The notes beneath the pieces are model-generated. The model worked only from the letters and a program-made list of their open reading frames with translations, made no database searches and had not been told where the DNA came from. A stretch of DNA of 64,000 nucleotides, from positions 868,001-932,000 of the forward strand of contig OZ251247.1 of assembly GCA_965240325.2 (NCBI GenBank). Reading direction: 5' to 3'. Each line of letters starts with the position of its first letter. Positions within the stretch are counted from its first letter, which is position 1. Position numbers and translations under genes: made by a program. Positions 34,240 through 55,319 of this stretch are shown here, piece after piece. This stretch comes from Rebecca billardiae RCC1528. Lineage: Eukaryota; Protista; Haptophyta.

Positions 34240-37200
34240 GAACGCGCGACGCGCGCGCTATATCGTCGCTGGCGCGCAGTGTTCGCAGCGGCGACCTTGT
34301 TGACGATGCGACTACTTCGATATTGCTGTGCGCGGCATCGTCAGCACTCCCGATTGACAGTTCAAAACAACGCGCGATCGAAGACGCGGCACGAGAAGCG
34401 CGCGCGACCTGGCCAGCGTGTGCGGACGACGTACCGCGGCCGGGCGAGGCGCCTCGGAGTTGGTATTACAGTACAGACCATAGCGTCGTGCGCCACCGCC
34501 GTGGCGACCCACCATCGGGCGCTCATGCTCGTCGGCCTACGAGCCGCCTCCGGCCGCGAGGGTCACCGCCGCCCGCGAGACGGTAACGCCCTGCTGCTCA
34601 CTGCGCGCACAAACTAGCGTACATCGCACAGAAATATGGGGGTATGTATCGGCCACAACCGCCCGACACGCCGCCCGCCTCGTCCCGCCCGCCCCGTCCC
34701 GTGCGCCCGCGCGTGCCGCGTGCGCGCAGCCCGCTTGCAGACGGAGCCTCCGACTGCCGCGGCGATGCGCGTGGCGCGACACGGCAGGGCTGCTGCTGGG
34801 GCTGCGCGCCCAGCGCGACGCGGCTGCCGGCCGAGCCGAGCGCGGCGCCGCGCCTCGCCGACTCCGCGGCGATTGGCGGCGGTGGCGGCGGTGGCGCGTG
34901 CGTGCCGCCCGCGCCCGCGCGCGTGTTGGCAGTGGGTGCATAGGACGCCGAACGAGTCGGGCGGTCGCGCTCAACAGCGTCCCAGAAGATCGATCCGACA
35001 CTGTTACCTCTCAGAGAGCGGATCACGACAGGTACCGCATAGTGAATGGTGATCAATTGATCGACGAGCTCAAATTGTACCATCTACTACTGGTAGTAGT
35101 ATGTAGGTATGCAAATGGGTGAAGTGGTTGAAACGCCAAAGTCATTATGGTCAGCTCGATCGAACGGGCACGTGGCCGATTCACACGCGCTCATCTTTTG
35201 CCAGGCGGCGCCGCCATCAGTCACGCGCGCTCCCCCACCCGCACGAGCATGTGGCTCTACTGCGGCAACCCCCCCTGCGGCGAGCGAGCTGGCGTGCGCT
35301 CCAATGACGAGGAGGAGCGTGGCGACGACGGCGCGCCCGAGGCACCGCCCGATGCCCGCGCCACGCTGCTCCAAGAGGGCGCCGAGCCGAGCGACGCGGC
35401 CGCGGGCGGCGACGACGCGCCGCCCGCGCTGTGGCGGCGGGTGCGCGAGCGGCTCGCGGGCTGGGGCGCGGGGCGGTGGCTGCTCGTCGTCGGCGCCGCG
35501 TGCGGCGCTGTCCTCATCACCGGCGCAGCGTACCACTGGCGGCACCACATCAAGGGCTCGCTCGGCCTGCTGCAGCAGCGAGGGAGGGCGGACGTGCCCG
35601 AGGATGCGCGCTGCCTCGGGCGCGTGGGGCGGCAGGACGGGCAGTGGCTCATGGCGCCGGGCTCGACGGTCGAGCACGCTGCGCGCTGGGCCTTTGTGTT
35701 GGACGCGTCCATCCTCGTCCTCGCCGTCGCCGCGCTGCTGCTGCTGCGCGCGTGGAAGAGCCCGGATGCGGCCACGTCCACGGCGAAGAGCCTCTTCTCT
35801 GCGGCCATGTCCGCGTTCGACCTGTTCACAGACGCGCTGCTGGCGTCGCAGTGGTGGCGGTGCGCGCACCGGCTGTGGGCGGGCCTCGCCTTCGTCTTCA
35901 CCGCCGCGGGCGCGCTGCCCACGCTCCAAGTCGCGCGCGCCGCGGCAGAGGTGGCCGCGCTGCCGCCCAATGCTAACATGTCTGACCGCAAAAGAGCGGA
36001 AGGGAAGCTGCGCGACGCGAAGGCGCTCGAGGCGACGGTGGAGAGCGCGCCGCAGACGTACCTGCAGGGGTACGCGATGCTGCGCATCGGCGCCGCGCAC
36101 GCCACGCCGCTGGCGCTCGCCTCGCTGCTCTTCTCCGCCTCGATGATTGGCCACCACACGTACGTGTACACCACCAGCAGCGTGGCTGTTGATTATTCTG
36201 ATGTTTTTTCTTTTACTACTTTCGGTCGGCCCGCCGTGCAGTGGTGGAGCGTGACCGTGCCCGTGGTCGGCTGGGCGGTGGGCGTGGACGACCTGGCGTG
36301 CCGCGTGGGCACGGCAGCGTCCGTGCTGTGCCGCGCGCTGACGCACGGCCTCTTCGCCTGCGCGTTCCACAGCTGGCTGCTGGCGGCGCTCGCGGCGGCG
36401 GCGCTCGCGCTGGTCGCCTCCGTGCGCTACAGCGGCCACGCCAAGATCATGGGTGCACTCGAAAGCGGAGGGCAGCTGGCGGCCTGGCGGAGCGCGGCGT
36501 GGACGGCGGGCATCGTGTACGCGGCCGTCGGCATGGTCGACCTGAGCGTGGAGGGGTGGCCTGCGCGCACAACGCCCACCCATATCCTGCTCGGCTGCGC
36601 GGAGGCCGCGCTGGCGGTGGCCGCGCTGCGCTGGCCGTCCGAGTGGCGCGAGGCGCAGAGCGCGCCGGCGCTCGCGGCACTCGCGTGGGCGTGGGGCTGC
36701 GCGTGGGTGGTGCACAAGGCCGTCGTCGTGCGCTTGCTGCAGCTCAAGGCAGATCCAGTGTTCGTCGACCTCAGGTGTGCGCGCGCGCGCGTGGCGACGA
36801 CGCGGCGCCTGCCGCGGCGGGTTTGGGCGCGCGCGCGGCGGCGGGCGGGCGGCGCGGCCGCGGGGCGGGGCGCTGTGGCAGCGGCGCGTGCGGCGCGCTC
36901 GCGCGTGCACGGGCGGGCACGCATCGCACGTGCGCGCTCGACACCCACTCACACCCCCGCCGCGCGCCCGCCCCTCCCGCCGCGCCTCCCGCAGTCGCTA
37001 CGCGATCGGCAACGCTGGCGCCACTGCCATCGCGGACGCCGTGCGCCACAGCCGCTCCCTGCAGTGGCTTGACCTCCGGTACGTGTGCACGCGCGCGGGG
37101 GCGGGCGCGGGGGTGGCGCTGAGGGGCGGGGGTGGATGAGCGGGCGCCAGCCGGGGCATGCGCTGCGGACGCACGTCGAGCGCGGCGCGCCGCGCGCGCG

Positions 37201-38995
37201 CGCGCCGCGCGCCCTCGTGCGGTGATGTCCGAGCGTGCGCCGCGCGCGCGGCCGCGTCGGCGGGCTCGGGCATGCGCGCGGCGGCGGGCGGGCGGCGCGG
37301 CCGCAGGGCGCTGTGGCAGTGGCGCAGGCGGCGCGCTCGCGCGTGCTCGGGCGGGCACGCTATGCGCGCGCGCGCTCGACACCCACTCACGCCCGCGCCG
37401 CGCGCCCGCCCCTCCCGCCGCGCCTCCCGCAGTGTCAACCGGATCGGCGCCGCTGGCGCCACCGCCATCGCGGAAGCAGTGCGCCACAGCCCCTCCCTGC
37501 AGAGGCTTGACCTCAGGTACGTGTGCACGCGCGCGGGGGCGGGCGCGGGGTTGGCGCGGAGGGGCGGGGGTGGGTGGATGGGCGCCAGCCGGGGCATGCG
37601 CTGCGGACGCACGTCGAGCGCGGCGCGCCGCGCGCGCGCGCGCCGCGCGCCCTCGCGCGGTGATGTCCGAGCGTGCGCCGCGCGCGCGCCCGCGTCGGCG
37701 GGCTCGGGCGCGCGCGCGGCGGCGGGCGGGCGGCGCGGCCGCGGGGCGCTGTGCCAGCGGCGCGTGCGGCGCGCTCGCGTGTGCTCGGGCGGGCACGCAT
37801 CGCGCGCGCGCGCTCGACACCCACTCACGCCCGCGTCGCGCGCCCGCCCCTCCCACCGCGCCTCCCGCAGTCTCAACCAGATCGGCGACGCTGGCGCCAC
37901 TGCCATCGCGGACGCCGTGCGCCACAGCCGCTCCCTGCAGAAGCTTGAGCTCGCGTACGTGTGCACGCGCGCGGGGGCCGGCGCGGGGGTGGCGCGGAGG
38001 GGCGGGGCTGGGTGGGCGGGTGCCAGCCGGGGCATGCGCTGCGGACGCACGTCGAGCGCGGCGCGCCGCGCGCGCGCGCGCCGCGCGCCCTCGCGCGGTG
38101 ATGTCCGAGCGTGCGCCGCGCGCGCGGCCGCGTCGGCGGGCTCGGGCGCGCGCGCGGCGGCGGGCGGGCGGCGCGGCCGTGGGGCGCTGTGCCAGCGGCG
38201 CGTGCGGCGCGCTCGCGTGTGCTCGGGCGGGCACGCATCGCGCGCGCGCGCTCGACACCCACTCACGCCCGCGTTGCGCGCCCGCCCCTCCCACCGCGCC
38301 TCCCGCAGTGTCAACCAGATCGGCGACGCTGGCGCCACTGCCATCGCGGACGCCGTGCGCCACAGCCGCTCCCTGCAGGAGCTTCACCTCAAGTACGCGT
38401 GTGCACGCGCGCGGGGGCGGGCGCGGGGGTGGCGCGGAGGGGCGGGGCTGGGTGGGTGGGCGCCAGCTGGGGCATGTGCTGAGGACGCACGTCGAGCGCG
38501 GCGCGCCGCGCGCGCGCGCGCCGCGCGCCCTCGCGCGGTGATGTCCGAGCGTGCGCCGCGCGCGCGGCCGCGTCGGCGGGCTCGGGCGCGCGCGCGGCGG
38601 CGGGCGGGCGGCGCGGCCGCGGGGCGCTGTGGCAGCGGCGCGTGCGGCGCGCTCGCGCGTGCACGGGCGGGCACGCGCCGTGCCCGCGCGCTCTGCCCTT
38701 GCTCACGCTCCACCCGCGCGCCCGACACCCGTCCCCCACTGCGCGCCTCCCGCAGTTTCAATGACCTCAGCGAGGCGGGCAAGAAGGCGGTGCGCGAGGC
38801 GTGGGAGCAGAGCGGCAAGGACGTGGTTAAGCTGTGGCTGTGATGTGCAGCTCCGGTGCTGCCGAGAGGCGATGGGTGGGGAGACTGCATGCGTCGGCAG
38901 GGCGTGGGACGAGCACCGGCCCACCCGCGCTGCGCTGGCGCTGCTCGGGCAATGGCAGTGCATGCAGTTGTCGGTGATGCGGGCGCCGCGCGGCA
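34240..38995. repeat. Segmental duplication unit (promoter + XK-LRR gene), paralogous to ~42510-47730
   Basis: Continuous high identity from GACGCGCGCTATATCGTCGCTGG through the 3' UTR ...GATGCGGGC(G/A)CCGCGCGGC. Confidence 0.9.
35249..38843 (+). CDS. XK-related (Xkr-like) multi-pass membrane protein fused to C-terminal RI/NLRC3-type LRRs, paralog 1; exons 35249-36774, 36995-37078, 37433-37516, 37871-37954, 38309-38392, 38756-38843
   Basis: XK-family motifs FDLFTDALLASQWW...WAGLAFVF and EATVESAPQTYLQGY...SLLFS. Four 84-bp phase-2 exons, each xNxIGDAGATAIADAVRHSRSLQxLxL, at an exact 438-bp period, plus a capping exon. An in-frame upstream ATG at 35147 is possible. Confidence 0.8.
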
Positions 38996-39456
38996 GCATG
39001 CGTGCGGCCGCCCGCCATTAGTTCATGTCAGATACTCGGTTAGTGCGCGCGTCAGGCACGTGACAGCGTCGGTGACGACGCACACCACGACGACGATTCC
39101 GCCCCCACACGGTGCCACAGTTAATGGCGTCGTAAAGTATATATATATACTATATAGCGTCACGGCAGCTAATGAGCAGTCGGGGGCCGACTGGCGGACT
39201 GCCCGCGCGATCTCGGCTCGCCCGCATATATATATCGCTCGGCCCATTGCGGCGCCGGGGCCACTCACTACTCAGGCGGCCGGCTCGGCTCGTAGTGAGT
39301 CGTGCCATTATATATTGTCATTGAGCCAATAGGCAATAGCCATCGCGGCAGCTGTGAGAGGGCGGAGGAGAGAGGGCGTGCACACGGCGCGCGAGCGCCG
39401 CCCCCGTGTGCACGCATTGCACTACCGACCCGCCTGGCGACAGAGGGCACCGGCGC

Positions 39457-40965
39457 TCAGCGGAGCGCGTTTGCAAGGGGCGGCAGCTGCCCCACGCGCT
39501 GCGGCGTCGGCTGCCTCCCAACCGGGCCGAGCACGCCGAGGCCGAGCGCTGCCGACTGCTTGCCGCACGCGTACACGGCGCCATCCGCAGTGACGAACAG
39601 CGCGTGGGCGGAGCCGAGCGCGCAACCCGTCACACGCGCACGCGCGAGGGAGCCCGCCCGCGTGGGCCGCGCGTGGGTGCTTCCCAAGCTCGACCGCTTC
39701 AAGCCGAGCTGGCCGTGCTCGTTCTCCCCGAACGCGTACACGCTGCCGTCCGCGTCCAGCACCGCGCTGCTGTGTGCGCCAGTGCTGGCGCGCACCGCGC
39801 GCACGGTAGCGAGCGCCCAAACGCGTTTGGGCAGGTACTGGGTGACCTTGTTGGCAACGCCTAAGCCGAGGGCACCTCGCCCACCCCAGCCGAACGAGTG
39901 CACGCCGCCCTCCGCGTCCACCACCAGGCTGTGCTCACCGCCCGCGCTCACGTGCACGGCGCGCACGCCCGCGAGCGCCTCGATGCGCCTCGGCGTGCGC
40001 TGCGTCACCACGGGATCGCCGCGGCCGAGCGCGCAATCATAGCCGCACGAGTACACGGCGCCGCCGGTTGTGAGGAGCAGCGTGTGGAGCGATCCCGCCG
40101 CCAGGCCGCCGACTCGCACGCCGTCCAGCGCCTCGACGCGCGTCGGCTCCCATCGCTCCTCCGTGTCGCCGTGGCCAAGCTGGCCCCGATAGTTGTTGCC
40201 CCAGCTGTGCGCGCACCCAGCGGCGGTGAGCGCGAGGCTGTGGAAGAAGCCGGCCGAAACGGCCACGATCACGTCGGCGCGCAGGGCTGCGACGACGTCG
40301 AACGTATGGCGCGTAGTCGCATCACCTACGCCGAGCCGGCCGTCCGCGTTCTCGCCGCACGCGTACACCGTCCCAGCATCGCTCAGCGCGAGCAGGTGGC
40401 CCCAGCCAGCGGCCACCGCGACCACGCGCACCGCACCCAGCGAGGGCACGCGCGTCGGTAGGAGCACCGCCGAGACACCCGGATGGCCCGATGCCGCCGG
40501 CGAGCAGTGCTCTCCTGTCGGCGCCGCGGTGGCCGCGTGCCGCACCACCCGCTCGCCGCACGTGTGCAGCCCGCCCTCCGCGTCCACAAACGCGCTGAAC
40601 GCGAGGTGGATCAAATCGCCATCGCCACCGGCAGCGGCCACGCAGGAATGCGCGCACGCGAGCTCGAGCACGCCTTCGCGGGCGAAGAGCTCCTCCGCCC
40701 ACGTGACCACGCCCGCGGGCAGCGTCGGCGACAGCGCGCGCTCGTGGCCGCGCGCGCATGAGCGCTCGCGCAGCGCGTGCTCGACCGGCGAGCGCTCGCC
40801 GGGCGCGCCGCGGAAGAGGCGCGCCGTGGCGTTGGCGGCGGCGAGGCCGCGCACGTCATCAAGGTGGGCGAGGATGCGCGAGATCAGCTCGGGCGGCAGG
40901 TCCTCGAGCCGCAGCGCTCCCGGGTGCGCCGCGCCATGCCCGCGCATCGCCGCTGGTGGTGCCAT
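39457..40965 (-). CDS. F-box + RCC1-repeat protein (intronless)
   Basis: N-terminal LEDLPPELISRILAHLD (F-box). Repeated VSAGFFHSLAL...G..SWGNN..GQLGHGD, VSAGGEHSLVV, STGAHSSAVL...YAFGENEHGQLG. Confidence 0.85.
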   Translation of the reverse strand: MAPPAAMRGHGAAHPGALRLEDLPPELISRILAHLDDVRGLAAANATARLFRGAPGERSPVEHALRERSCARGHERALSPTLPAGVVTWAEELFAREGVLELACAHSCVAAAGGDGDLIHLAFSAFVDAEGGLHTCGERVVRHAATAAPTGEHCSPAASGHPGVSAVLLPTRVPSLGAVRVVAVAAGWGHLLALSDAGTVYACGENADGRLGVGDATTRHTFDVVAALRADVIVAVSAGFFHSLALTAAGCAHSWGNNYRGQLGHGDTEERWEPTRVEALDGVRVGGLAAGSLHTLLLTTGGAVYSCGYDCALGRGDPVVTQRTPRRIEALAGVRAVHVSAGGEHSLVVDAEGGVHSFGWGGRGALGLGVANKVTQYLPKRVWALATVRAVRASTGAHSSAVLDADGSVYAFGENEHGQLGLKRSSLGSTHARPTRAGSLARARVTGCALGSAHALFVTADGAVYACGKQSAALGLGVLGPVGRQPTPQRVGQLPPLANALR

Positions 40966-41049
40966 CCGTCGCGTCGTCGCGAGGCAAGATAGTCGCACTC
41001 GACCCTTGGTCGCACCGACCAAGCCGAGTGGCCGGCGGCGGGCCGCACG

Positions 41050-42258
41050 ATGGGGGTTGCGCACCGCGCCGCCCTGGCGCTGTGCGTGCTCCGCTCCCGT
41101 GCTGACCGCCGAGCCGCCGCGCGCGCGCGGCGACGTCGCGGGTGGCCTGGACGTCGGCGTCACGCCCTCGCCGTGCGCGGTGCTGTGGCGCGCCGCTCGG
41201 CTCTGTCGCTGCTGCACGGCGAGCACGAGCTGCACGCGGGGGCGAAGCAGTCGGTGTTCGACTTGTTCGAGCCCGAGTGGGCGTGCGAGTCGGAGGAGCG
41301 CCTCGGCGGCCCCGTCTTCCCGCAGCTCGACCCGCCGTACCTCGCGTACGGCGACGGCCCCAAGTGTGTGTGCGCCGTGGACAGGCTGCGCGCGCCCTGC
41401 CTGGTGTACAGCGTGGGCAGCGACGACGACTGCACGTTCGAGGCGGCGGTGCGCAGCCGCACGCCGTGCGAGGTGCACACGTTCGACCGCACGCTCGCGC
41501 GCCGCGGGCTCAGCTTCAGCGGCGCCGCCGTCGCCGCCTTCCACCCGCTCGGGCTGAGCGACCGCGACGGCGCAGACGCGGAGGAGGCGGCGGACGCGCG
41601 CCGGGCAGAGGCGCGCGCGGCCGCGGCGGCGGCGGCGCGGGCGGGTGGTGGTGGCGGTGGTGGTGGCAGCGGCAGCAGTGCTGCGCGGCCAGCCTCCGCC
41701 GGCGCCGCGCCCGCCGCGCCAGCAGGCGCGCGGCGCGGCCTAGAGCCCGGAGTGGCCGAGGCGGAGGGCGGGCCTATGCGCACGCTGCAGTCGATGATGC
41801 GCGCGCTCGGGCACAGCGGCCGCGTGCTCGACGTGCTCAAGGTGGACTGCGAGGGGTGCGAGTGGCGCGCGCTGCCGCCCGTGCTGCGCGCCATCCGCGA
41901 CGGCCGGCTGCGCGTCGGCCAGCTGCTCGTGGAGCTGCACATGCAGTGGGAGGCGGGCATCTACGGCCGCCCCAAGTACGCGCGCGCGCTGCGCAACGCG
42001 AGCGCGCTCTGGGTCGGGGCGGACGGCGCGCGGCTGCGCGCGTTCCACAAGGAGCGCAACGGCTGGGGCTGCGGCGGCTGGCGCTGCGCCGAGTACGCCT
42101 TTGTGCACGAGGCGCACGCGTGCAGGGCGTTCGTCTCCACGCACTGCCCGGGGCGCCGCGCCGAGGCGGAGGTGTGCGGCGGCGCCGGCGCCGCCGCCGC
42201 GCGCCGATCTGCTCGACGACGTGCGTCCGCCGCTACTCCGCCTGCAAGATTGCTCTGA
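41050..42258 (+). CDS. SAM-dependent methyltransferase, Methyltransf_22/METTL24-like, copy 1
   Basis: FEPEWAC..EERLG, GDGPKCVC, CLVYSVGS...FE, CEVHTFD, LGH.GRVLDVLKVDCEGCEW, QLLVELH, FHKERN, CAEYAFV. Confidence 0.8.
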   Translation: MGVAHRAALALCVLRSRADRRAAARARRRRGWPGRRRHALAVRGAVARRSALSLLHGEHELHAGAKQSVFDLFEPEWACESEERLGGPVFPQLDPPYLAYGDGPKCVCAVDRLRAPCLVYSVGSDDDCTFEAAVRSRTPCEVHTFDRTLARRGLSFSGAAVAAFHPLGLSDRDGADAEEAADARRAEARAAAAAAARAGGGGGGGGSGSSAARPASAGAAPAAPAGARRGLEPGVAEAEGGPMRTLQSMMRALGHSGRVLDVLKVDCEGCEWRALPPVLRAIRDGRLRVGQLLVELHMQWEAGIYGRPKYARALRNASALWVGADGARLRAFHKERNGWGCGGWRCAEYAFVHEAHACRAFVSTHCPGRRAEAEVCGGAGAAAARRSARRRASAATPPARLL

Positions 42259-43556
42259 TGGGCGGCCTAGTAGTAGTGCCCCGCCGTGAGTCCGCGGCAC
42301 GGCCGCGGCCGCCCTGGTAGCCGTTCCCGTGCTGAGTAGTAGCTAAGTCCCGCGCGGCGCACGCGCGCGTCGTAACGGTCATGTCGCGTCTTCGCGCGGG
42401 CCAAATCACGGGCTGCGTGAATGAGTGGCGGTTCGAGCGAGCAGCTAATGAGCAGCCAGTAGTCGCGTCGTCGTAGTTGCTGCTGCGCCGCGGCTTGACG
42501 ATAACAACACGTGACGCGCGCTATATCGTCGCTGGCGCGCAGTGTTCGCAGCCGCCACCTTGTTGACGCGATGCGACTACTACGATATTGTGCGCGGCAT
42601 CGTCAGCACTCCCGATGTTCAAACAACGCGCGGTCGAAGACGCGGCACGAGAAGCGCGCGCGACCTGGCCAGCGTGTGCGGACGACGTCCCGCGGCCGGG
42701 CGAGGCGCCTCGGAGTTAGTAATACAGTACAGACCACAGCGTCGTGCGCCACCGCCGTGGCGACCCACCATCGGGCGCTCATGCTCGTCGGCCTACGAGC
42801 CGCCTCCGGCCGCGAGGGTCGCCGCCGCCCGCGAGACGGTAACGCCCTGCTGCTCACTGCGCGCACAAACTAGCGTACATCGCACCGCAATATGGGGGTA
42901 TGTATCGGCCACAACCGCCCGACACGCCGCCCGCCTCGTCCCGCCCGCCCCGTCCCGTGCGCCCGCGCGTGCCGCGTGCGCGCAGCCCGCTTGCAGACGA
43001 GCCGCCGTCACCGCGGCGATGCGCGTGGCGCGACACGGCCGGGCTGCTGCTGGGGCTGCGCGCCCGGCGCGATGCGGCTGCCGGCCGAGCCGAGCCGAGC
43101 GCCGCGCCTCGCCGACTCCGCGGCGATTGGCGGCGGTGGCGGCGGTGGCGCGTGCGCGCCGCCCGCGCCCGCGCGCGTGTTGGCAGTGGGTGCATAGGAC
43201 GCCGAAGTCCGAACGAGTCGGGCGGTCGCGCTCAACAGCGTCCCAGAAGATCGATCCGATACTGTTACAAGGGGGCACTGTTATCATACCTCTCAGAGAG
43301 CGGATCACGACAGGTACGCAAATGAATGGTGATCAATTGATGATCGACGAGCACAAATTGTACCGTCTACTACTGGTAGTAGTATGTAGGTATGCAAATG
43401 GGTGAAGTGGTTGAAACGCCAAAGTCATTAACTATTCATTATGTGGTCATTATGGTCAGCTCGATCGAACGAGCACGTACGTGGCCGATCACACGCGCTC
43501 ATCTTTTTCCAGGCGGCGCCGCCATCAATCACGCGCGCTACCCCACCCGCCCGAGC

Positions 43557-46500
43557 ATGTGGCTCTACTGCGGCAAGAACCCCTGCGGCACGCAAGCCGG
43601 CGTGCGCTCCAGTGACGAGGAGAAGCGTGGCGACGACGGCGCGCCCGAGGCACCGCCCGATGCCCACGCCACGCTGCTCCAAGAGGGCGCCGAGCCGAGC
43701 GACGCGGCCGCGGGCGGCGACGACGCGCCGCCCGCGCCGTGGCGGCGGGTGCGCGAGCGGCTCGCGGGCTGGGGCGCGGGGCGGTGGCTGCTCGTCGTCG
43801 GCGCCGCGTGCGGTGCTGTCCTCATCACCGGCGCAGCGTACCACTGGCGGCACCACATCAAGGGCTCGCTCGGCCTGCTGCAGCAGCGAGGGACGGCGGA
43901 CGTGCCCGAGGACGCGCGCTGCCTCGCGCGCGTGGGGCGGCAGGACGGGCAGTGGCTCATGGCGCCGGGCTCGACGGTCGAGCATGCTGCGCGCTGGGCC
44001 TTTGTGTTGGACGCGTCCATCCTCGTCCTCGCCGTCGCCGCGCTGCTGCTGCTGCGCGCGTGGAAGAGCCCGGATGCGGCAGCGTCCACGGCGAAGAGCC
44101 TCTTCTCTGCGGCCATGTCCGCGTTCGACCTGTTCACAGACGCGCTGCTCGCGTCGCAGTGGTGGCGGTGCGCGCACCAGCTTTGGGCGGGCCTCGCCTT
44201 CGTCTTCACCGCCGCGGGCGCGCTGCCCACGCTCCAAGTCGCGCGCGCCGCGGCAGAGGTGGCCGCGCTGCCGCCCGATGCTCACGAGTATGACCGCAGA
44301 CGGGCGGAAGGGAAGCTGCGCGACGCGAAGGCGCTCGAGGCGACGGTGGAGAGCGCGCCGCAGACGTACCTGCAGGGGTACGCGATGCTGCGCATCGGAG
44401 CCGCGCACGCCACGCCGCTGGCGCTCGCCTCGCTGCTCTTCTCCGCCTCGATGATTGGCCACCACACGTACGTGTACACCATCAGCAGCGTGGCTTTTTT
44501 TGAAGGTCGGCCCATGGTGCAGTGGTGGAGCGTGGCCGTGCCCGTGGTCGGCTGGAAGGTGGGCGTGGACGACCTGGCGTGCCGCGTGGGCACTGTAGCG
44601 TCCGTGCTGTGCCGCGCGCTGACGCACGGCCTCTTCGCCTGCGCGTTCCACAGCTGGCTGCTGGCGGCGCTCTCGGCGGCGGCGCTCGCGCTGGTGGCCT
44701 CCGTGCGCTACAGCGGCCACCTCGAGGTCACTGGTGCACTCGAGCGCAAAGGGCAGCTGGCGGCCTGGCGGAGCGCGGCGTGGGAGGCGGGCATCGTGTA
44801 CGCCGCCGTCGGCATGGTCGACCTGAGCTTGACGGGGTGGCCTGCACGCACGGCGCCCACCCACGTCCTGCTCGGCTGCGCGGAGGCCGCGCTGGCGGGG
44901 GCCGCGCTGCGCTGGCCGTCCGAGTGGCGCGAGGCGCAGAGCGCGCCGGCGCTCGCAGCACTCGCGTGGGCGTGGGGCTGCGCGTGGGTGGTGCACAAGG
45001 CCGTCGTCGTGCGCCTGCTGCAGCTCAAGGCCGCCCCGGTGGGCGTCGACCTCAGGTGTGCGCGCGCGCGCGTGGCGGCGTGGCGGCGGCTGCGGCGGGC
45101 TCGGGCGCGCGCGCTGCGGCGGGCGGGCGGCGCGGCCGCGGGGCGCTGTGGCAGCGGCGCGGGCGGCGCGCGCGCGCGTGCACGGGCGGGCACGCGCCGC
45201 ACGCGCGCGCCCGACACCCACTCACGCCCGCGCCGCGCGCCCGTCCCTCCCGCCACGCCTCCCGCAGTCGCAACGGGATCGGCGCCGCTGGCGCCACTGC
45301 CATCGCGGACGCCGTGCGCCACAGCCGCTCCCTGCAGACGCTCATCCTCTAGTACGTGTGCACGCGCGCGGGGGCGGGCTCGGGGGTGGCGCGGAGGGGT
45401 GGGGGTGGGTGAGCGGACGCCAGCCGGGGCATGCGCTGAGGAAGCATGTCGAGCGCGGCGCGCCGCGCGAGCGCGCTGCGCGCCCTCGCGCGGTGATGTC
45501 CGAGCGTGCGCCGCGCGCGCGGCCGCGTCGGCGGGCTCGGGCGCGCGCGCTGCGGCGGGCGGGCGGCGCGGCCGCGGGGCGCTGTGGCAGCGGCGCGTGC
45601 GGCGCGCGTGCACGGGTGGGCACACGCCGCGCGCGCGCGCTCGACACCCACTCACGCCCGCGCCGCGCGCCCGCCCCTCCCGCCGCGCCTCCCGCAGTGA
45701 CAACCAGATCGGCAACGCTGGCGCCACCGCCATCGCGGACGCCGTGCGCCACAGCCGCTCCCTGCAGGAGCTTGAGCTCAGGTACGTGTGCACGCGCGCG
45801 GGGGTGGGCGCGGGGGTGGCGCGGAGGGGTGGGGGTGGGTGAGCGGGTGCCAGCCGGAGCATGCGCTGCGGAGCGGAAGCATGTCGAGCGCGGCGCGCCG
45901 CGCGCGCGCGCGCCGCGCGCCCTCGCGCGGCGATGTCCGAGCGCGCGCCGCGCGCGCGGCCGCGTCGGCGGGCTCGGGCGCGCGCGCGGCGGCGGACGCG
46001 CGCGCGGCGGCGGGCGGGCGGCGCGGCCGTGGGGCGCTGTGGCAGCGGCGCGTGCGGCGCGCGTGCACGGGTGGGCACACGCCGCGCGCGCGCGCTCGAC
46101 ACCCACTCACGCCCGCGCCGCGCGCCCGCCCCTCCCGCCGCGCCTCCCGCAGTGAGAACGAGATCGGCGACGCTGGCGCCACCGCCATCGCGGACGCCGT
46201 GCGCCACAGCCGCTCCCTGCAGATGCTCTACCTCCGGTACGTGTGCACGCGCGCGGGGGCGGGCGCGGGGGTGGCGCGGAGGGGCGGGGCTGGGTCGGTG
46301 GGTGCCAGCCGGAGCATGCGCTGCGGAGCGGAAGCATGTCGAGCGCGGCGCGCCGCGCGCGCGCGCGCCGCGGCCCTCGCGCGGCGATGTCCGAGCGTGC
46401 GCCGCGCGCGCGGCCGCGTCGGCGGGCTCGGGCGCGCGCGCGGCGGCGGGCGCGCGCGCGGCGGCGGGCGGGCGGCGCGGCCGTGGGGCGCTGTGGCAGC

Positions 46501-47579
46501 GGCGCGTGCGGCGCGCGTGCACGGGTGGGCACACGCCGCGCGCGCGCGCTCGACACCCACTCACGCCCGCGCCGCGCACCCGCCCCTCCCACCGCGCCTC
46601 CCGCAGTGACAACCAGATCGGCGACGCTGGCGCCACTGCCATCGCGGACGCCGTGCGCCACAGCCGCTCCCTGCAGAAGCTCTGGCTCAAGTACGTGTGC
46701 ACGCGCGCGGGGGCGGGCGCGGGGGTGGCGCGGAGGGGCGGGGGTGGGTGGGTGGGCGCCAGCTGGGGCATGCGCTGCGGAAGCATGTCGAGCGCGGAGC
46801 GCCGCGCGCGCGCGCGCCGCGCGCCCTCGCGCGGTGATGTCCGAGCGCGCGCCGCGCGCGCGGTCGCGGCGGCGGGCTCGGGCGCGCGCGCTGCGGCGGG
46901 CGGCGCGGCCGCGGGGCGCTGTGGCAGCGGCGCGAGCGGCGCGCTCGCGCGTGCTCGGGCGGGCACGCATCGCGCGTGCGCGCTCGACACTCACTCACGC
47001 CCGCGCCGCGCGCCCGCCCCTCCCACCGCGCCTCCCGCAGTACCAACCAGATCGGCGACGCTGGCGCCACCGCCATCGCGGACGCCGTGCGCCACAGCCG
47101 CTCCCTGCAGGAGCTCAACCTCAAGTACGTGTGCACGCGCGCGGGGGCGGGCGCGGGGGTGGCGCGGAGGGGCGCGGCTGGGTGGGTGGGCGCCAGCTGG
47201 GGCATGCGCTGCGGAAGCATGTCGAGCGCGGCGCGCCGCGCGCGCGCGCGCCGCGCGCCCTCGCGCGGTGATGTCCGAGCGCGCGCCGCGCGCGCGGCCG
47301 CGTCGGCGGGCTCGGGCGCGCGCGCTGCGGCGGGCGGGCGGCGCGGCCGCGGGGCGCGGTGGCATCGGCGCGTGCGGCTTGCTCGCGCGTGCTCGGGCGG
47401 GCACGCACCGCGCGCGCGCGCTCTGCCCTTGCTCACGCTTCAGCCGCGCGTCTGACACCCGCCCCCGTCTGCGCGCCTCCCGCAGTCACAATGACATCAG
47501 CGAGGCGGGCGAGAAGGCGGTGCGCGAGGCGTGGGAGCAGAGCGGCAAGGACGCTGGCAAGCTGTTTCTGTATGTGTAA
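43557..47579 (+). CDS. XK-related membrane protein + LRR, paralog 2; exons 43557-45055, 45268-45351, 45698-45781, 46153-46236, 46607-46690, 47041-47124, 47486-47579
   Basis: Same XK motifs and five 84-bp LRR exons. The junction CTC TA|GT would read TAG unspliced but TAT after splicing, which supports the intron model. Confidence 0.8.
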
Positions 47580-48929
47580 TGCGAGTGCAGCGCCGGTGCT
47601 GCCGAGAGGCGATGGGCCGGGAGACTGCATGCGTCGGCAGGGCGTGGGACGAGCACCGGCCCACCCGCGCTGCGCTGGCGCTGCTCGGGCAATGGCAGTG
47701 CACGCAGTCGTCGGTGATGCGGGCACCGCGCGGCGCCGTGGGCGGCGCCGCCCAACCGACGAGCGCTCGCGCGCCGCACGGCGGCAGTGACGACGGCCGG
47801 CATTGTTCGAGCGCGGCGGGCGTAGACGGCGCGGGCGCAGGTCGGCGCGCACAAGTGGAGGCGTCGTTTCCCATTCGATCGGCGTGGCGCCGTGCGCAGT
47901 GCTCGCCTCCGGCTTCCGACTCGACTCGACTCGGCCCAGCGCGCCGCGGGCTCGGCCGGCGCCGCGGCGCGGCGCGCGGTATTGGCCGAGCTCGCGCGCC
48001 GCACGGCTACGGTGACGACGGGCTCGGCGGAAAGCGGGTGTCGTCAGCGTAGGCGAAGCTCTGCGCGCGCACGGGTGGAGGCGTTTCGACCAGGTCACAT
48101 GGCGTGGAGCCGTGCTCGCTCGCCGGCTTCGGACTCGACTCGGCCGGTCGGCGCTCAGTCAGCAGCGCGTGGCGCGTGGTCCCGCAGAAGAGGCCGCGCG
48201 TGGCCGCTGCAGCTCGGCGCAGTGCTGATGTGAGGCGCCGCAGCTGCTTGGATTATATTCGCGTTCATCAATATACAGTGGGCTGGTCCCACTGGCGGAG
48301 CAGAAATTCAAAACTATCTGACGATCGGCGCGGTCTCAGCGACTCGATCGGCGGAACAAACGGGGTGCGACACGGACTAGCGCCGGCGGGGCCGGAGTAT
48401 GCGCCGGCGTCTGCCAAGCTCACCAGCGCGACTTCACGGCATCAAAGCGCGCGGACGAAAATCAGCGCTCTCCGAGAGGGCCCAGGGCCTGCGCGGGGTC
48501 GCGGTCACGGCGCCGGGCGCGGGGATGCTGTCAGCTTCCGAGCCCGTACAGCTCGTCGCGCGCGCTCGGGGTGCGCGAGGTGACGCGGTACGACGGTGGC
48601 GTGGACCACCAGTCGCACGCCTCAGCTGCGTCGTCAGCGTGTACAGCCCACCGCTGCCACTAGCGCCAATGTGAATGGCACTGCTCGGAACAGCTCGATG
48701 CGTCGCGCGTCGTCGTTTGCGTCGACTAGTCGCTCGGCCGGAGGTGCAGCTGACGCGCTCGCCTAAGCAGCACCGCAGACCCCACTCGATGGTGTGCGCG
48801 GCGTGAAGTTCACATCACCGAACGTCTTCTTGTGGCGAGATATGCGCACCGCCCGCCGCAGCGCCCGCCGCTGCCGAGCCGGCCGCCGCTGCGGCCGCCG
48901 CGCCGGCTGCAGCCGCCGCGACCGCCGTC

Positions 48930-53248: not shown

Positions 53249-53372
53249 GCCGGCGTCCGTCGGCGTCGAGCTTTGCCGCCACTGTGCGGTGCTGCCCAAA
53301 CGGAAAGGCGGTCCGTCCGGTCCGGCCGCAGCCCGATGGCACGAGGGGCCGGTCGGGGCGGCGGGCCGCACG

Positions 53373-54588
53373 ATGGGGTTCGGGCGCACCGCGCCGCCCT
53401 GGCGCTGTGCGTGCTCGCGCCGCCCGTGCTGACCGCCGAGCCGCCGCGCGCGCGCGGCGACGTCGCGGGCGTCCCGGACGTCGGCGTCACGCCCTCGCCG
53501 TGCGCGGTGCTGTGGCGCGCCGCTCGGCTCTGTCGCTGCTGCACGGCGAGCACGAGCTGCACGCGGGGGCGAAGCAGTCGTCGGTGTTCGACTTGTTCGA
53601 GCCCGAGTGGGCGTGCGAGTCGGAGGAGCGCCCCGGCGGCCCCGTCTTCCCCCAGCTCGACCCGCCCTACCTCGCGTACGGCGACGGCCCCAAGTGTGTG
53701 TGCGCCGTGGACAAGCTGCGCGCGCCCTGCCTGGTGTACAGCGTGGGCAGCGACGACGACTGGACGTTCGAGGCGGCGGTGCGCAGCCGCACGCCGTGCG
53801 AGGTGCACACGTTCAACCACACGCTCGCGCGCCGCGGGCTCAACTTCAGCGGCGCCGCCGTCGCCGCCTTCCGCCCGCTCGGGCTGAGCGACCGCGACGG
53901 CGCAGACGCGGAGGAGGCGGCGGAGGCGCGCCGGGCAGAGGCGCGCGCGGCCGCGGCGGCGGCGGCGCGGGCGGGTGGTGGTGGCGGTGGTGGTGGCAGC
54001 GGCAGCAGTGCTGCGCGGCCCGCCTCCGCCGGCGCCGCGCCCGCCGCGCCAGCGGGCGCGCGGCGCGGCCTAGAGCCCGGAGTGGCCGAGGCGGAGGGCG
54101 GGCCTATGCGCACGCTGCAGTCGATGATGCGCGCGCTCGGGCACAGCGGCCGCGTGCTCGACGTGCTCAAGGTGGACTGCGAGGGGTGCGAGTGGCGCGC
54201 GCTGCCGCCCGTGCTGCACGCCATCCGCGACGGCCGGATGCGCGTCGGCCAGCTGCTCGTGGAGCTGCACCTGCAGTGGGAGGCGGGCATCTACGGCCGC
54301 CCCAAGTACGCGCGCGCGCTGCGCAACGCGAGCGCGCTCTGGGTCGGGGCGGACGGCGCGCGGCTGCGCGCGTTCCACAAGGAGCGCAACGGCTGGGGCT
54401 GCGGCAGCTGGCGCTGCGCCGAGTACGCCTTTGTGCACGAGGCGCACGCGTGCAGGGCGTTCGTCTCCACGCACTGCCCGGGGCGCCGCGCCGAGGCGGA
54501 GGTGTGCGGCGGCGCCGGCGCCGCCGCCGCGCGCCGATCTGCTCGACGACGTGCGTCCGCCGCTACTCCGCCTGCAAGATTGCTCTGA
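53373..54588 (+). pseudogene. Methyltransf_22-like copy 2 (N-terminus frameshifted)
   Basis: Near-identical to 41050-42258. The homologous ATG at 53373 reads out of frame to an early TGA, and HTFD is changed to HTFN. Confidence 0.6.
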
Positions 54589-55319
54589 TGGGCGGCCTAG
54601 TAGCAGTGCCCCGCCGTGAGTCCGCGGCACGGCCGCGGCCGCCCTGGTAGCCGTTCCCGTGCTGAGTAGCAGTAGCTAAGTCCCGCGCGGCGCACGCGCG
54701 TCGTAACGGTCGCGTCCGTTCACGGGCCCGATCACGGGCCGCTCCGTGTGACCCGTGTGGCCGTGTCCGTGAGTAGGGTAGGGGGGCCAAAGTGGCACTG
54801 TAGCATTACTGACGGCCACGAGCGCGGGTCCTAGCGAGTGTTTAGAGCTGATTTCGGGCTGGATCATTTGCCCTCTGGAGGGGTCTGGGCCGGCCATGTA
54901 AAAAAATCAGGTGCACATACCCTGAATATGGGGCGTAACGGCTAGCATATTTTATTGGGATTACCGCAAGCTCCGAGCGTCTCGAGCCCTGCTAAAAGCT
55001 CACCGCGCACGACAGGACGGACGCCACCGCGAGGATCACATGCCTCGCGATCTCATCAGCTCTCAAGCCTCTGAACCTGGCCCTTATTTCCGGCGCTCTT
55101 GCGCCGGGCCAAAACAGCGATCGAGCTCCGATCGCTCCTGGGCTCGGGGCGGTAGTATCATCGCCGTGCCGACTTACCCAGATTTTGCCGCGATCAGCCA
55201 ATCGGCGATCGCACCGTCCGTCCTGTTGCCGCTCAACTTTGTACCACTGCTTCTCGTCCATGTCCGGTGCTGCTCACCTGCTTTCCTTGGACAAATCCAG
55301 TGTACCAGCATGACGCCCG

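Follow-up and report, generated by a model that had tools for sequence, protein, structure and literature searches.

Tandem genes in the alga Rebecca billardiae that probably encode XK-like membrane proteins with a tail of one-exon LRR cassettes

Two tandem paralogs in Rebecca billardiae RCC1528, gene A (35249-38843) and gene B (43557-47579), both on the + strand, are probably functional duplicates that encode multi-pass membrane proteins of the XK/Xkr family with a tail of RI-type LRRs; judging from the sequence, we put the probability of this reading at roughly 0.6. Positions are those of the window, the whole 64-kb stretch of DNA that was analysed. That the fused XK-LRR architecture is itself real and expressed appears quite likely. 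The XK family, RI-type LRRs and the exon-shuffled LRR design were known already; what seems to be new is the predicted combination of an XK-like membrane domain with an LRR tail that has one repeat per exon. No description of an XK-LRR fusion, or of XK-related proteins in algae, was found in the literature searched, which agrees with the initial annotation, where no such fusion was known. To our knowledge, the XK family has been described almost exclusively in animals, and only some of the animal members are known scramblases; a few act as apoptotic scramblases, and these are switched on via the C-terminal tail. In A and B, this tail position is taken by a fast-evolving LRR module. If expressed, the proteins would be a natural experiment in XK gating and a candidate means of coupling recognition to lipid signalling at the membrane, or to cell death, in phytoplankton, in which bloom collapse is driven by virus-induced death.

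Both genes have the same architecture, with a big exon 1 followed by 84-bp exons in a single phase (four in A, five in B) and by a short cap exon that carries the stop codon. This layout had been proposed in the initial annotation and is present in both paralogs, with GT..AG introns throughout and 11 of 11 splice-site pairs intact. The features are as follows:

34252..35248, + strand: upstream region co-duplicated with gene A; matches 42515-43556 at 95%, with 10 indels
35249..36774, + strand: gene A exon 1, 508 codons + 2 nt, from the ORF and splice donor
35819..35878, + strand: gene A helix-1/2 motif D191-x3-D195-x14-W210, spaced as Xkr8 D26/D30/W45
36020..36073, + strand: gene A motif K258-x2-E261-x3-E265-x-APQ-x2-LQ-x-Y, spaced as Xkr8 K134/E137/E141
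36775..36994, + strand: gene A intron 1, 220 nt, from alignment and blastn
36995..37078, + strand: gene A LRR cassette 1, 84 bp
37433..37516, + strand: gene A LRR cassette 2, 84 bp
37871..37954, + strand: gene A LRR cassette 3, 84 bp; Pfam LRR_6 E 0.0017 for the cassette alone
38309..38392, + strand: gene A LRR cassette 4, 84 bp
38756..38843, + strand: gene A cap exon, FNDLSEAGKKAVREAWEQSGKDVVKLWL, then stop (TGA)
43557..45055, + strand: gene B exon 1, XK-like domain, 499 codons + 2 nt
45268..45351, + strand: gene B LRR cassette 1, 84 bp
45698..45781, + strand: gene B LRR cassette 2, 84 bp
46153..46236, + strand: gene B LRR cassette 3, 84 bp
46607..46690, + strand: gene B LRR cassette 4, 84 bp
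47041..47124, + strand: gene B LRR cassette 5, 84 bp; Pfam LRR_6 E 5e-4
47486..47579, + strand: gene B cap exon, HNDISEAGEKAVREAWEQSGKDAGKLFLYV, then stop

Once spliced, the coding sequence of gene A comes to 1950 nt and 649 aa, and the product of gene B to 670 aa; gene A has an alternative ATG upstream, at 35147, and gene B has one at 43392. All nine LRR exons measure exactly 84 bp, and their first base is invariably T, which finishes the codon opened in the preceding exon. The donor reads GTACGTGTGC after eight of the nine cassettes and GTACGCGTGT after cassette 4 of gene A, while both exon-1 donors read GTGTGCGCGC and all acceptors CCTCCCGCAG. As exon plus intron, the arrays register in Tandem Repeats Finder with a period of 438 repeated 4.4 times (92% matches) and a period of 454 repeated 5.3 times (90%). 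No further cassettes of the same type occur elsewhere within the 64-kb window.

The N-terminus of the gene A exon 1 product is acidic; a hydrophobic helix at residues ~75-95, a Cys/Trp motif that is conserved and one additional TM helix at ~147-170 come before the XK-like domain. The presence of an XK-family domain in exon 1 is supported by Pfam's own threshold: the XK-related profile PF09815 is matched at 33.4 bits in gene A (E 3e-8) and 33.9 bits in gene B (E 2.3e-8), above the curated gathering cut-off of 24.8 bits. Overall, the matches range over 30.2-33.9 bits (E 3e-7 to 2.3e-8) and fall in two co-linear stretches, profile positions 3-45 and 128-195/237, with the final third of the profile unmatched by exon 1. 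Only XK-related was found by Pfam in exon 1, and neither a NACHT nor an NB-ARC NTPase was detected there. Besides the Pfam score, the XK-family assignment made in the initial annotation is borne out by an intermediate homolog (P0001, described below), a match in the PDB and language-model features. XKR9 (7p14) is the sole PDB sequence match of the family profile (E 0.086), and the HMM alignment puts both Asp residues on its TDLVAD and also aligns both Glu residues of the E...E..PQ..LQ.Y motif. Among the nearest ESM Atlas clusters, 84 of 100 are XK-related (best score 0.90, 198 shared features). Two AlphaFold models reached pLDDT values of 46.6 and 45.8 from shallow alignments of only six and four sequences, respectively, and Foldseek with the first of these low-confidence models gave no match in the PDB at E <0.1, XKR8 ranking 13th and XKR9 19th (E >0.4). 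The fold used for comparison was a cuboid of eight TM helices with two re-entrant hairpins (7DCE/7P14, structures of the animal Xkr8/XKR9/CED-8 group of caspase-activated phospholipid scramblases, Pfam PF09815).

The two XK-family motifs that had been named at the outset, D.xTD...W and ESAPQ..LQ.Y, are found in both paralogs as DLFTD...W (residues 191-210) and KALEATVESAPQTYLQGY (258-275). What A and B share here with Xkr8, XKR9 and CED-8 is Asp-x3-Asp in helix 1, a Trp at +15 and Lys-x2-Glu-x3-Glu-x-x-Pro-Gln. The spacing of D191, D195, W210, K258, E261 and E265 is the same in A, B and the homologs P0001 and P0005; the counterpart of Xkr8 R183 was not placed. In Xkr8, residues D26, D30, W45, K134, E137 and E141 are required for or regulate scrambling, with a proposed lipid path and gating Trp (PMC8500837). 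The XK-like domain of A and B is divergent, with 63 residues from the second Asp to the Lys versus 104 in Xkr8, and its helix 2-4 segment is ~40 residues shorter than that of Xkr8.

HMMER, run exhaustively against 1.84 billion representatives, returned four matches. The best, P0001 (E 2e-14), is encoded without introns, has 442 aa and no LRR, and ends directly after the XK domain; on its own it reaches 51.8 bits against XK-related (E 8e-14, profile 8-288). P0005 (533 aa), which like P0003 comes from an MMETSP transcriptome, has a signal-peptide-like N-terminus and again no LRR. These algal/protist XK-like proteins (P0001, P0003/P0005) are the nearest relatives among the representatives, being 33-39% identical to A and B in the XK domain and sharing with them the N-terminal 'A-x-C-L...G..D..WL.AP' motif and the extra TM helix; unlike A and B, they stop after the last XK helix. 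L001, a contig of another organism, carries P0002, whose alignment to spliced A and B crosses the predicted exon 1/exon 2 junction and enters the first LRR, and the LRR is followed by a homologous cap, LDLSRNGLSDESKSVVQQAW..., and the stop, in the order XK to LRR to cap and in an uninterrupted ORF. The contig has two frameshifts and just one LRR. A related organism has a remnant (L004-L006) that is clearly degenerate, interrupted by stops and by a large deletion inside it. Searches of a protein collection with exon 1, the family alignment and P0001 as queries returned only P0001 itself, blanks that say little as Ala-rich words probably swamped the word filter. Metagenome contigs scanned with the family alignment gave no match, nor did those scanned with the spliced exon-exon junction pattern.

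The nine cassettes each consist of 28 codons and read xNxIGxAGATAIADAVRHSRSLQxLxLx. They had been described as 28-aa RI-type LRRs, and in 9/9 both length and consensus agree with the pattern that defines this type, a period of 28-29 residues with the consensus L-x-x-L-x-L-x-x-N-x-I-G-x-x-G-a. Single cassettes score 14-20 bits against Pfam LRR_6 (PF13516; E 5e-4 to 0.05) versus a cut-off of 23.4, the exon boundary leaving half of the profile to each. Five codons on the concave face are hypervariable (pN 0.566 versus pS 0.040), whereas the other 23, scaffold codons have pN 0.029 and pS 0.071; nonsynonymous divergence at the five surface codons is ~8x the silent divergence. Cassette introns are 88-97% identical (divergence 0.03-0.12), versus just 83-94% for the cassette exons. 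The suggestion in the initial annotation that the family diversifies by cassette gain, loss and exchange holds in part: the number of cassettes differs (4 versus 5), and variation is concentrated on concave-face codons, which is what a recognition surface under diversification would show. We see about an even chance that the LRR is such a surface. Because all cassettes share one phase, unequal crossing-over or exon skipping could alter the repeat number without breaking the frame.

Genes A and B lie in a segmental duplication, 34252-38994 versus 42515-47734, that is ~91% identical by blastn and includes the region upstream of gene A, which probably holds the promoter and 5' UTR. Exon 1 of gene B has 90.6% protein identity to that of A and one in-frame 27-nt deletion. 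An intact ORF is weak evidence here, because local GC is 75-80% and long open frames turn up by chance in every frame. Exon 1 as a chance ORF was judged unlikely, since it matches the Pfam profile, retains the conserved motifs and has just one indel, in frame. The scarcity of stops at this GC content would also keep frames open if one or both copies were young pseudogenes or unconstrained duplicates, the LRR pattern being inherited from a functional ancestor or donor array. Such a history, which we consider improbable, would fit the exon 1 dN/dS of 0.82 (XK part 0.74; dS 0.06), which is not clearly different from neutral, the substitution density in exon 1 (5.1%), which equals that of upstream non-coding DNA (4.9%), the degenerate remnant in the related organism, and the lack of a gene product in the protein-collection search, a search of limited weight given the Ala-rich words. 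The distribution of indels and substitutions argues otherwise: exon 1 has one indel, in-frame, in 1.5 kb, whereas the upstream 1 kb has 10, half of them out of frame, and the amino-acid changes in exon 1 are clustered in loops with the TM motifs identical. Moreover, no splice-site pair has been lost, and pN remains below pS in the scaffold codons. It would also be conceivable that the model is mis-joined, the XK exon being a complete single-exon gene and the cassette array a separate transcript or a non-coding tandem repeat, as might be suggested by P0001 and P0005, the closest full-length homologs, which end after the XK domain. This is very improbable, as A and B have no stop close to where the XK domain ends, and the unspliced frame continues into intron 1 for ~100 Arg/Ala-rich codons. 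The donor instead yields a V-x-V-D-L-S-x-x-x-I-G reading, the same as in the uninterrupted P0002 ORF; an independent LRR gene would find neither a start codon nor a first exon in the 220 nt of intron 1, and the junction is conserved in both paralogs.

With A and B read as functional XK-LRR genes, the LRR domain (4-5 repeats plus cap) would replace the cytosolic C-terminal regulatory tail of Xkr8/XKR9, and would sit at the site of the Xkr8 plug that is under caspase or kinase control. It probably lies in the cytosol: solved structures have the XK C-terminus there, RI-type LRRs occur there too, and the addition of two N-terminal helices leaves the usual XK orientation unchanged. There it might bind a fast-changing partner, and this binding could control the membrane domain, either in lipid scrambling or in an XK-like partnership with a lipid-transfer protein. 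The idea of a sensor-gated scramblase is plausible; a specific role of the protein as a ligand-gated scramblase is doubtful. Decidedly speculative is a ligand-gated scramblase family for recognition, whose hypervariable LRR, in the cytosol, would sense a cue from a virus, another cue inside the cell or one that tells self from non-self, and would directly release the XK-type domain. The collapse of lipid asymmetry would then serve as a cell-death or 'eat-me'/abortive-infection signal from a one-protein sensor-executor that has no NTPase switch and is diversified by cassette exchange and possibly exon skipping. Alternatively, the architecture may be real and the membrane domain not a gated scramblase. 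In that case, the LRR would act as an adaptor, docking the XK-like protein to a bulk lipid-transfer protein of the VPS13 type (human XK partners VPS13A), to the cytoskeleton or to an organelle contact site, with the variable residues tuning partner choice among paralogs rather than sensing foreign ligands. We regard this as unlikely, although most XK-family members are without demonstrated scramblase activity of their own, RI-type LRRs are general protein-protein interaction modules and the segment from helix 2 to helix 4 of the XK domain is shortened. The residues needed for Xkr8 scrambling are kept with the same spacing, and a nonsynonymous excess at surface codons of the kind seen here would be more usual for a surface in an arms race or in allorecognition than for a housekeeping adaptor.

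The C-terminal tail of Xkr8 and XKR9 has a regulatory role (PMC10938166, PMC8298096). A and B resemble Xkr8, XKR9 and CED-8 in having a C-terminal element on the membrane domain, regulatory in the animal proteins and putatively so here, as well as in the PF09815 match above threshold. Unlike them, they come from an alga, add two N-terminal helices and a conserved Cys/Trp ectodomain motif, and have a domain of 4-5 LRRs in place of the short caspase- or kinase-regulated tail: after the last TM helix, the chain runs straight into the LRR array, with no plugging tail like that of Xkr8. NLR/NOD-like receptors likewise have an RI-type LRR as a C-terminal variable module on an effector or signalling domain, but in A and B the LRR is attached straight to a membrane domain without NACHT or NB-ARC, and the NLR reading was rejected since the NTPase domain is absent. 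The gene design is that of the brown-algal LRR-ROCO and NB-ARC-TPR candidate receptors, which are products of exon shuffling (Zambounis et al., 2012, PMC3341825; PMC11378527), with one repeat per exon in one phase, repeat number varying among paralogs, variation on the binding face and tandem paralogs. Membership in the brown-algal ROCO family was rejected as there is no ROC-COR domain; the partner of the repeats is a ROC-COR GTPase or NB-ARC in those receptors and an XK-like membrane protein in A and B, where the repeat is of the 28-residue RI type and the host is a GC-rich microalga.

Intron 1 of gene A bears on how the fusion came about. Homology to the 3' part of the cassette introns covers its 3' ~195 nt and leaves out its 5' ~25 nt, which are unrelated. 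Intron 1 is therefore a truncated cassette intron, so that the fusion came about by intronic recombination and predates the A/B duplication.

The region as a whole is very GC-rich eukaryotic sequence (70-80% GC), and an ORF scan of it returned open frames of several hundred codons in all six frames, so that at such a GC content open frames alone are little evidence. Indeed, the ORF list is no evidence of genes in this genome; between 34000 and 49000, ORFs of 300-800 codons overlap on both strands (e.g., 35087-36952 and 44708-46990, both on the reverse strand). The compositional extreme of the window lies at 1-2000, where GC reaches 83% and the AT skew is +0.20. The models of the two tandem paralogs, genes A and B, come from direct reading of the DNA together with a scan for CAG-N84-GT units, which picks out the 84-bp exons (cassettes, one LRR each):

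35249-36774, forward strand, gene A exon 1 (DNA reading)
36995-37078, 37433-37516, 37871-37954 and 38309-38392, forward strand, four 84-bp exons of gene A (CAG-N84-GT scan)
38756-38843, forward strand, cap exon of gene A, ending in TGA (DNA reading)
43557-45055, forward strand, gene B exon 1
45268-45351, 45698-45781, 46153-46236, 46607-46690 and 47041-47124, forward strand, five 84-bp exons of gene B (CAG-N84-GT scan)
47486-47579, forward strand, cap exon of gene B

The predicted products are 649 aa (A) and 670 aa (B) long. All 11 introns are of the GT..AG type, and their donors and acceptors hardly differ. Tandem Repeats Finder detects two arrays whose unit is an exon plus its intron, with periods of 438 (4.4 copies, 92%) and 454 (5.3 copies, 90%). 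The first base of each cassette is a T closing the codon that the exon before it opens, so the gain, loss or skipping of any cassette would leave the frame intact.

The gene structure proposed in the initial annotation, with a large first exon, 4 or 5 cassettes of 84 bp in one phase and a capping exon, is thereby borne out fully, and its assignment of exon 1 to the XK family holds against the Pfam XK-related profile (PF09815): both copies score 30-34 bits (E down to 2.3e-8), above the curated cut-off of 24.8 bits. The match consists of two co-linear stretches (profile 3-45 and 128-195/237), the last third of the profile being without a match. Searched exhaustively with HMMER, 1.84 billion cluster representatives yielded only four relatives. 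The top one, the LRR-less homolog P0001 (E 2e-14), matches XK-related at 8e-14 over profile positions 8-288, and the likewise LRR-less P0003 matches at 8e-13; these intermediates therefore support homology of exon 1 to the family. Among all PDB sequences, the group's profile had a sole match, XKR9 (7p14), with a weak E of 0.086 and an alignment falling on both signature motifs of the family. In the ESM Atlas, XK-related clusters make up 84 of the 100 nearest. AlphaFold, run twice on shallow alignments (6 and 4 sequences), reached a pLDDT of 46, with Foldseek output at noise level. Scrambling by Xkr8 depends on D26, D30, K134, E137 and E141, with W45 as the gating residue (Sakuragi et al., PMC8500837). 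Genes A and B carry counterparts at equal spacing in D191, D195, W210, K258, E261 and E265, a pattern shared by P0001 and P0005, with 63 residues between the second Asp and the Lys in A/B vs. 104 in Xkr8.

It is likely (probability roughly 0.75-0.8), as judged indirectly from sequence, that exon 1 and the cassettes form a single fused XK-LRR gene. Frame, phases and stop are consistent over all exons of each copy (6 in A, 7 in B). The spliced exon-exon junction pattern had no match in metagenome contigs. A 1.17-kb contig of another organism (L001, JGI sample 3300016802) carries the uninterrupted ORF P0002, whose alignment with the spliced A/B proteins crosses the predicted junction of exons 1 and 2 and reaches into the first LRR; after this LRR, the contig has a homologous cap (LDLSRNGLSDESKSVVQQAW...stop). 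L001 is probably transcriptome-derived, since a protein from a sister sample clusters with an MMETSP transcript. It has one repeat only and two frameshifts; along L001:1-1171 (XK C-half, one LRR, cap) the frame changes near nt ~240 and again near ~865, so that the central part is read in another frame than the two ends. The cause could be aberrant splicing, an artefact of assembly or transcription of a pseudogene. Between A and B, exon 1 has one indel in 1.5 kb, in-frame and of 27 nt; ten indels fall in the 1 kb upstream, and the lengths of five are not divisible by three. Most amino-acid changes in exon 1 lie in loops. Its dN/dS of 0.82 (0.74 for the XK part) at a dS of 0.06 counts against functional constraint. 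In a related organism, a degenerate remnant of this gene is found (L004:2990-4125, L005 and L006; Logan ERR14847148/49/52), with 82% DNA identity to exon 1, in-frame stops and loss of the part matching residues ~144-378. This remnant is clearly dead, which fits a birth-and-death family. The same Logan samples also contain intact, LRR-less P0001.

All nine cassettes encode 28 residues (xNxIGxAGATAIADAVRHSRSLQxLxLx), and by this pattern the repeats are LRRs of the ribonuclease-inhibitor (RI) class. Because the exon boundary cuts the repeat inside the beta-strand, one cassette spans just half of the Pfam LRR_6 profile, and single cassettes at this coverage match with E 5e-4 to 0.05. Variable columns number 20 of 84 nucleotides, 16 of them at exon edges. 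The five codons at LQ-x-L-x-L-x-x-N-x have a pN of 0.566 vs. a pS of 0.040; for the other 23, pN is 0.029 and pS 0.071. The introns are more alike than the exons (88-97% vs. 83-94% identical), most so within a gene (0.97 for neighbours), which points to concerted evolution or recent in-array duplication that would postdate the gene duplication. Such a pattern is expected where selection maintains or promotes variation on the concave face and recombination keeps all other parts uniform, and we put a diversifying recognition role for the LRR at about even odds. Intron 1 (220 and 212 nt) begins with ~25 nt unrelated to the cassette introns, and its last ~195 nt share >90% identity with the 3' part of those introns, which means that the join between the XK exon and the array was made at a break within an intron of the cassette type. 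A and B have the same junction, so the fusion predates their duplication.

The XK profile match begins at about residue 181, preceded by two hydrophobic helices (residues ~75-95 and ~147-170) with a motif between them, A-x-C-L...G..D..WL.AP, common to P0001 and P0003/P0005. Residues ~96-170 (35534-35758 in gene A, 43842-44066 in gene B) comprise this N-terminal motif and one extra TM helix, found clade-wide, including P0001 and P0003/P0005. P0005 has a signal-peptide-like N-terminus in place of the first helix, and either arrangement would put the motif on the outside. The XK domain would then start from the cytosolic side, like Xkr8, and its C-terminus, hence the LRR, would therefore be cytosolic, in accord with RI-type LRRs being cytosolic. 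Xkr8 needs the single-pass partner basigin, and, purely as speculation, the N-terminal motif and extra helix may be a built-in counterpart of it. In Xkr8 and XKR9, a cytosolic C-terminal tail keeps the protein inactive until cut or phosphorylated (PMC10938166; PMC8298096). In A and B, the position of this regulatory tail is occupied by the variable LRR. Most economically, binding of a partner to the LRR would control the membrane domain. The output would be scrambling or the recruitment of another lipid machine, as XK works with VPS13A, and sequence alone does not discriminate between them; that the product is a ligand-gated scramblase seems rather unlikely.

Brown-algal LRR-ROCO genes have one LRR per exon in one phase, with variable copy number and a variable binding face (PMC3341825; PMC11378527), and this is the gene design of A and B. 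Design and XK family are thus each known already, and what appears new is the combination, for which the literature search returned no description, just as the initial annotation had known of no described XK-LRR fusion. Among the relatives retrieved, only P0002 has it; the nearest full-length homologs of A and B are without LRRs.

The two loci form a segmental duplication (34252-38994 vs. 42515-47734, ~91% identity), with an RCC1-like and a Methyltransf_22 gene between them. The latter, FkbM-like (ORF 41050-42258), is spanned by a second segmental duplication of 1.39 kb (41034-42413 vs. 53357-54739, 96.8% identity). The RCC1-like gene is a 695-codon ORF at 39457-41544 on the reverse strand. 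Its product has an F-box-like LEDLPPELISRILAHLDD motif followed by a beta-propeller of RCC1-like type (six RCC1 repeats; Pfam WD40_RLD E 1.8e-65), and at its 5' end the ORF overlaps the opposite-strand one that starts at 41050.
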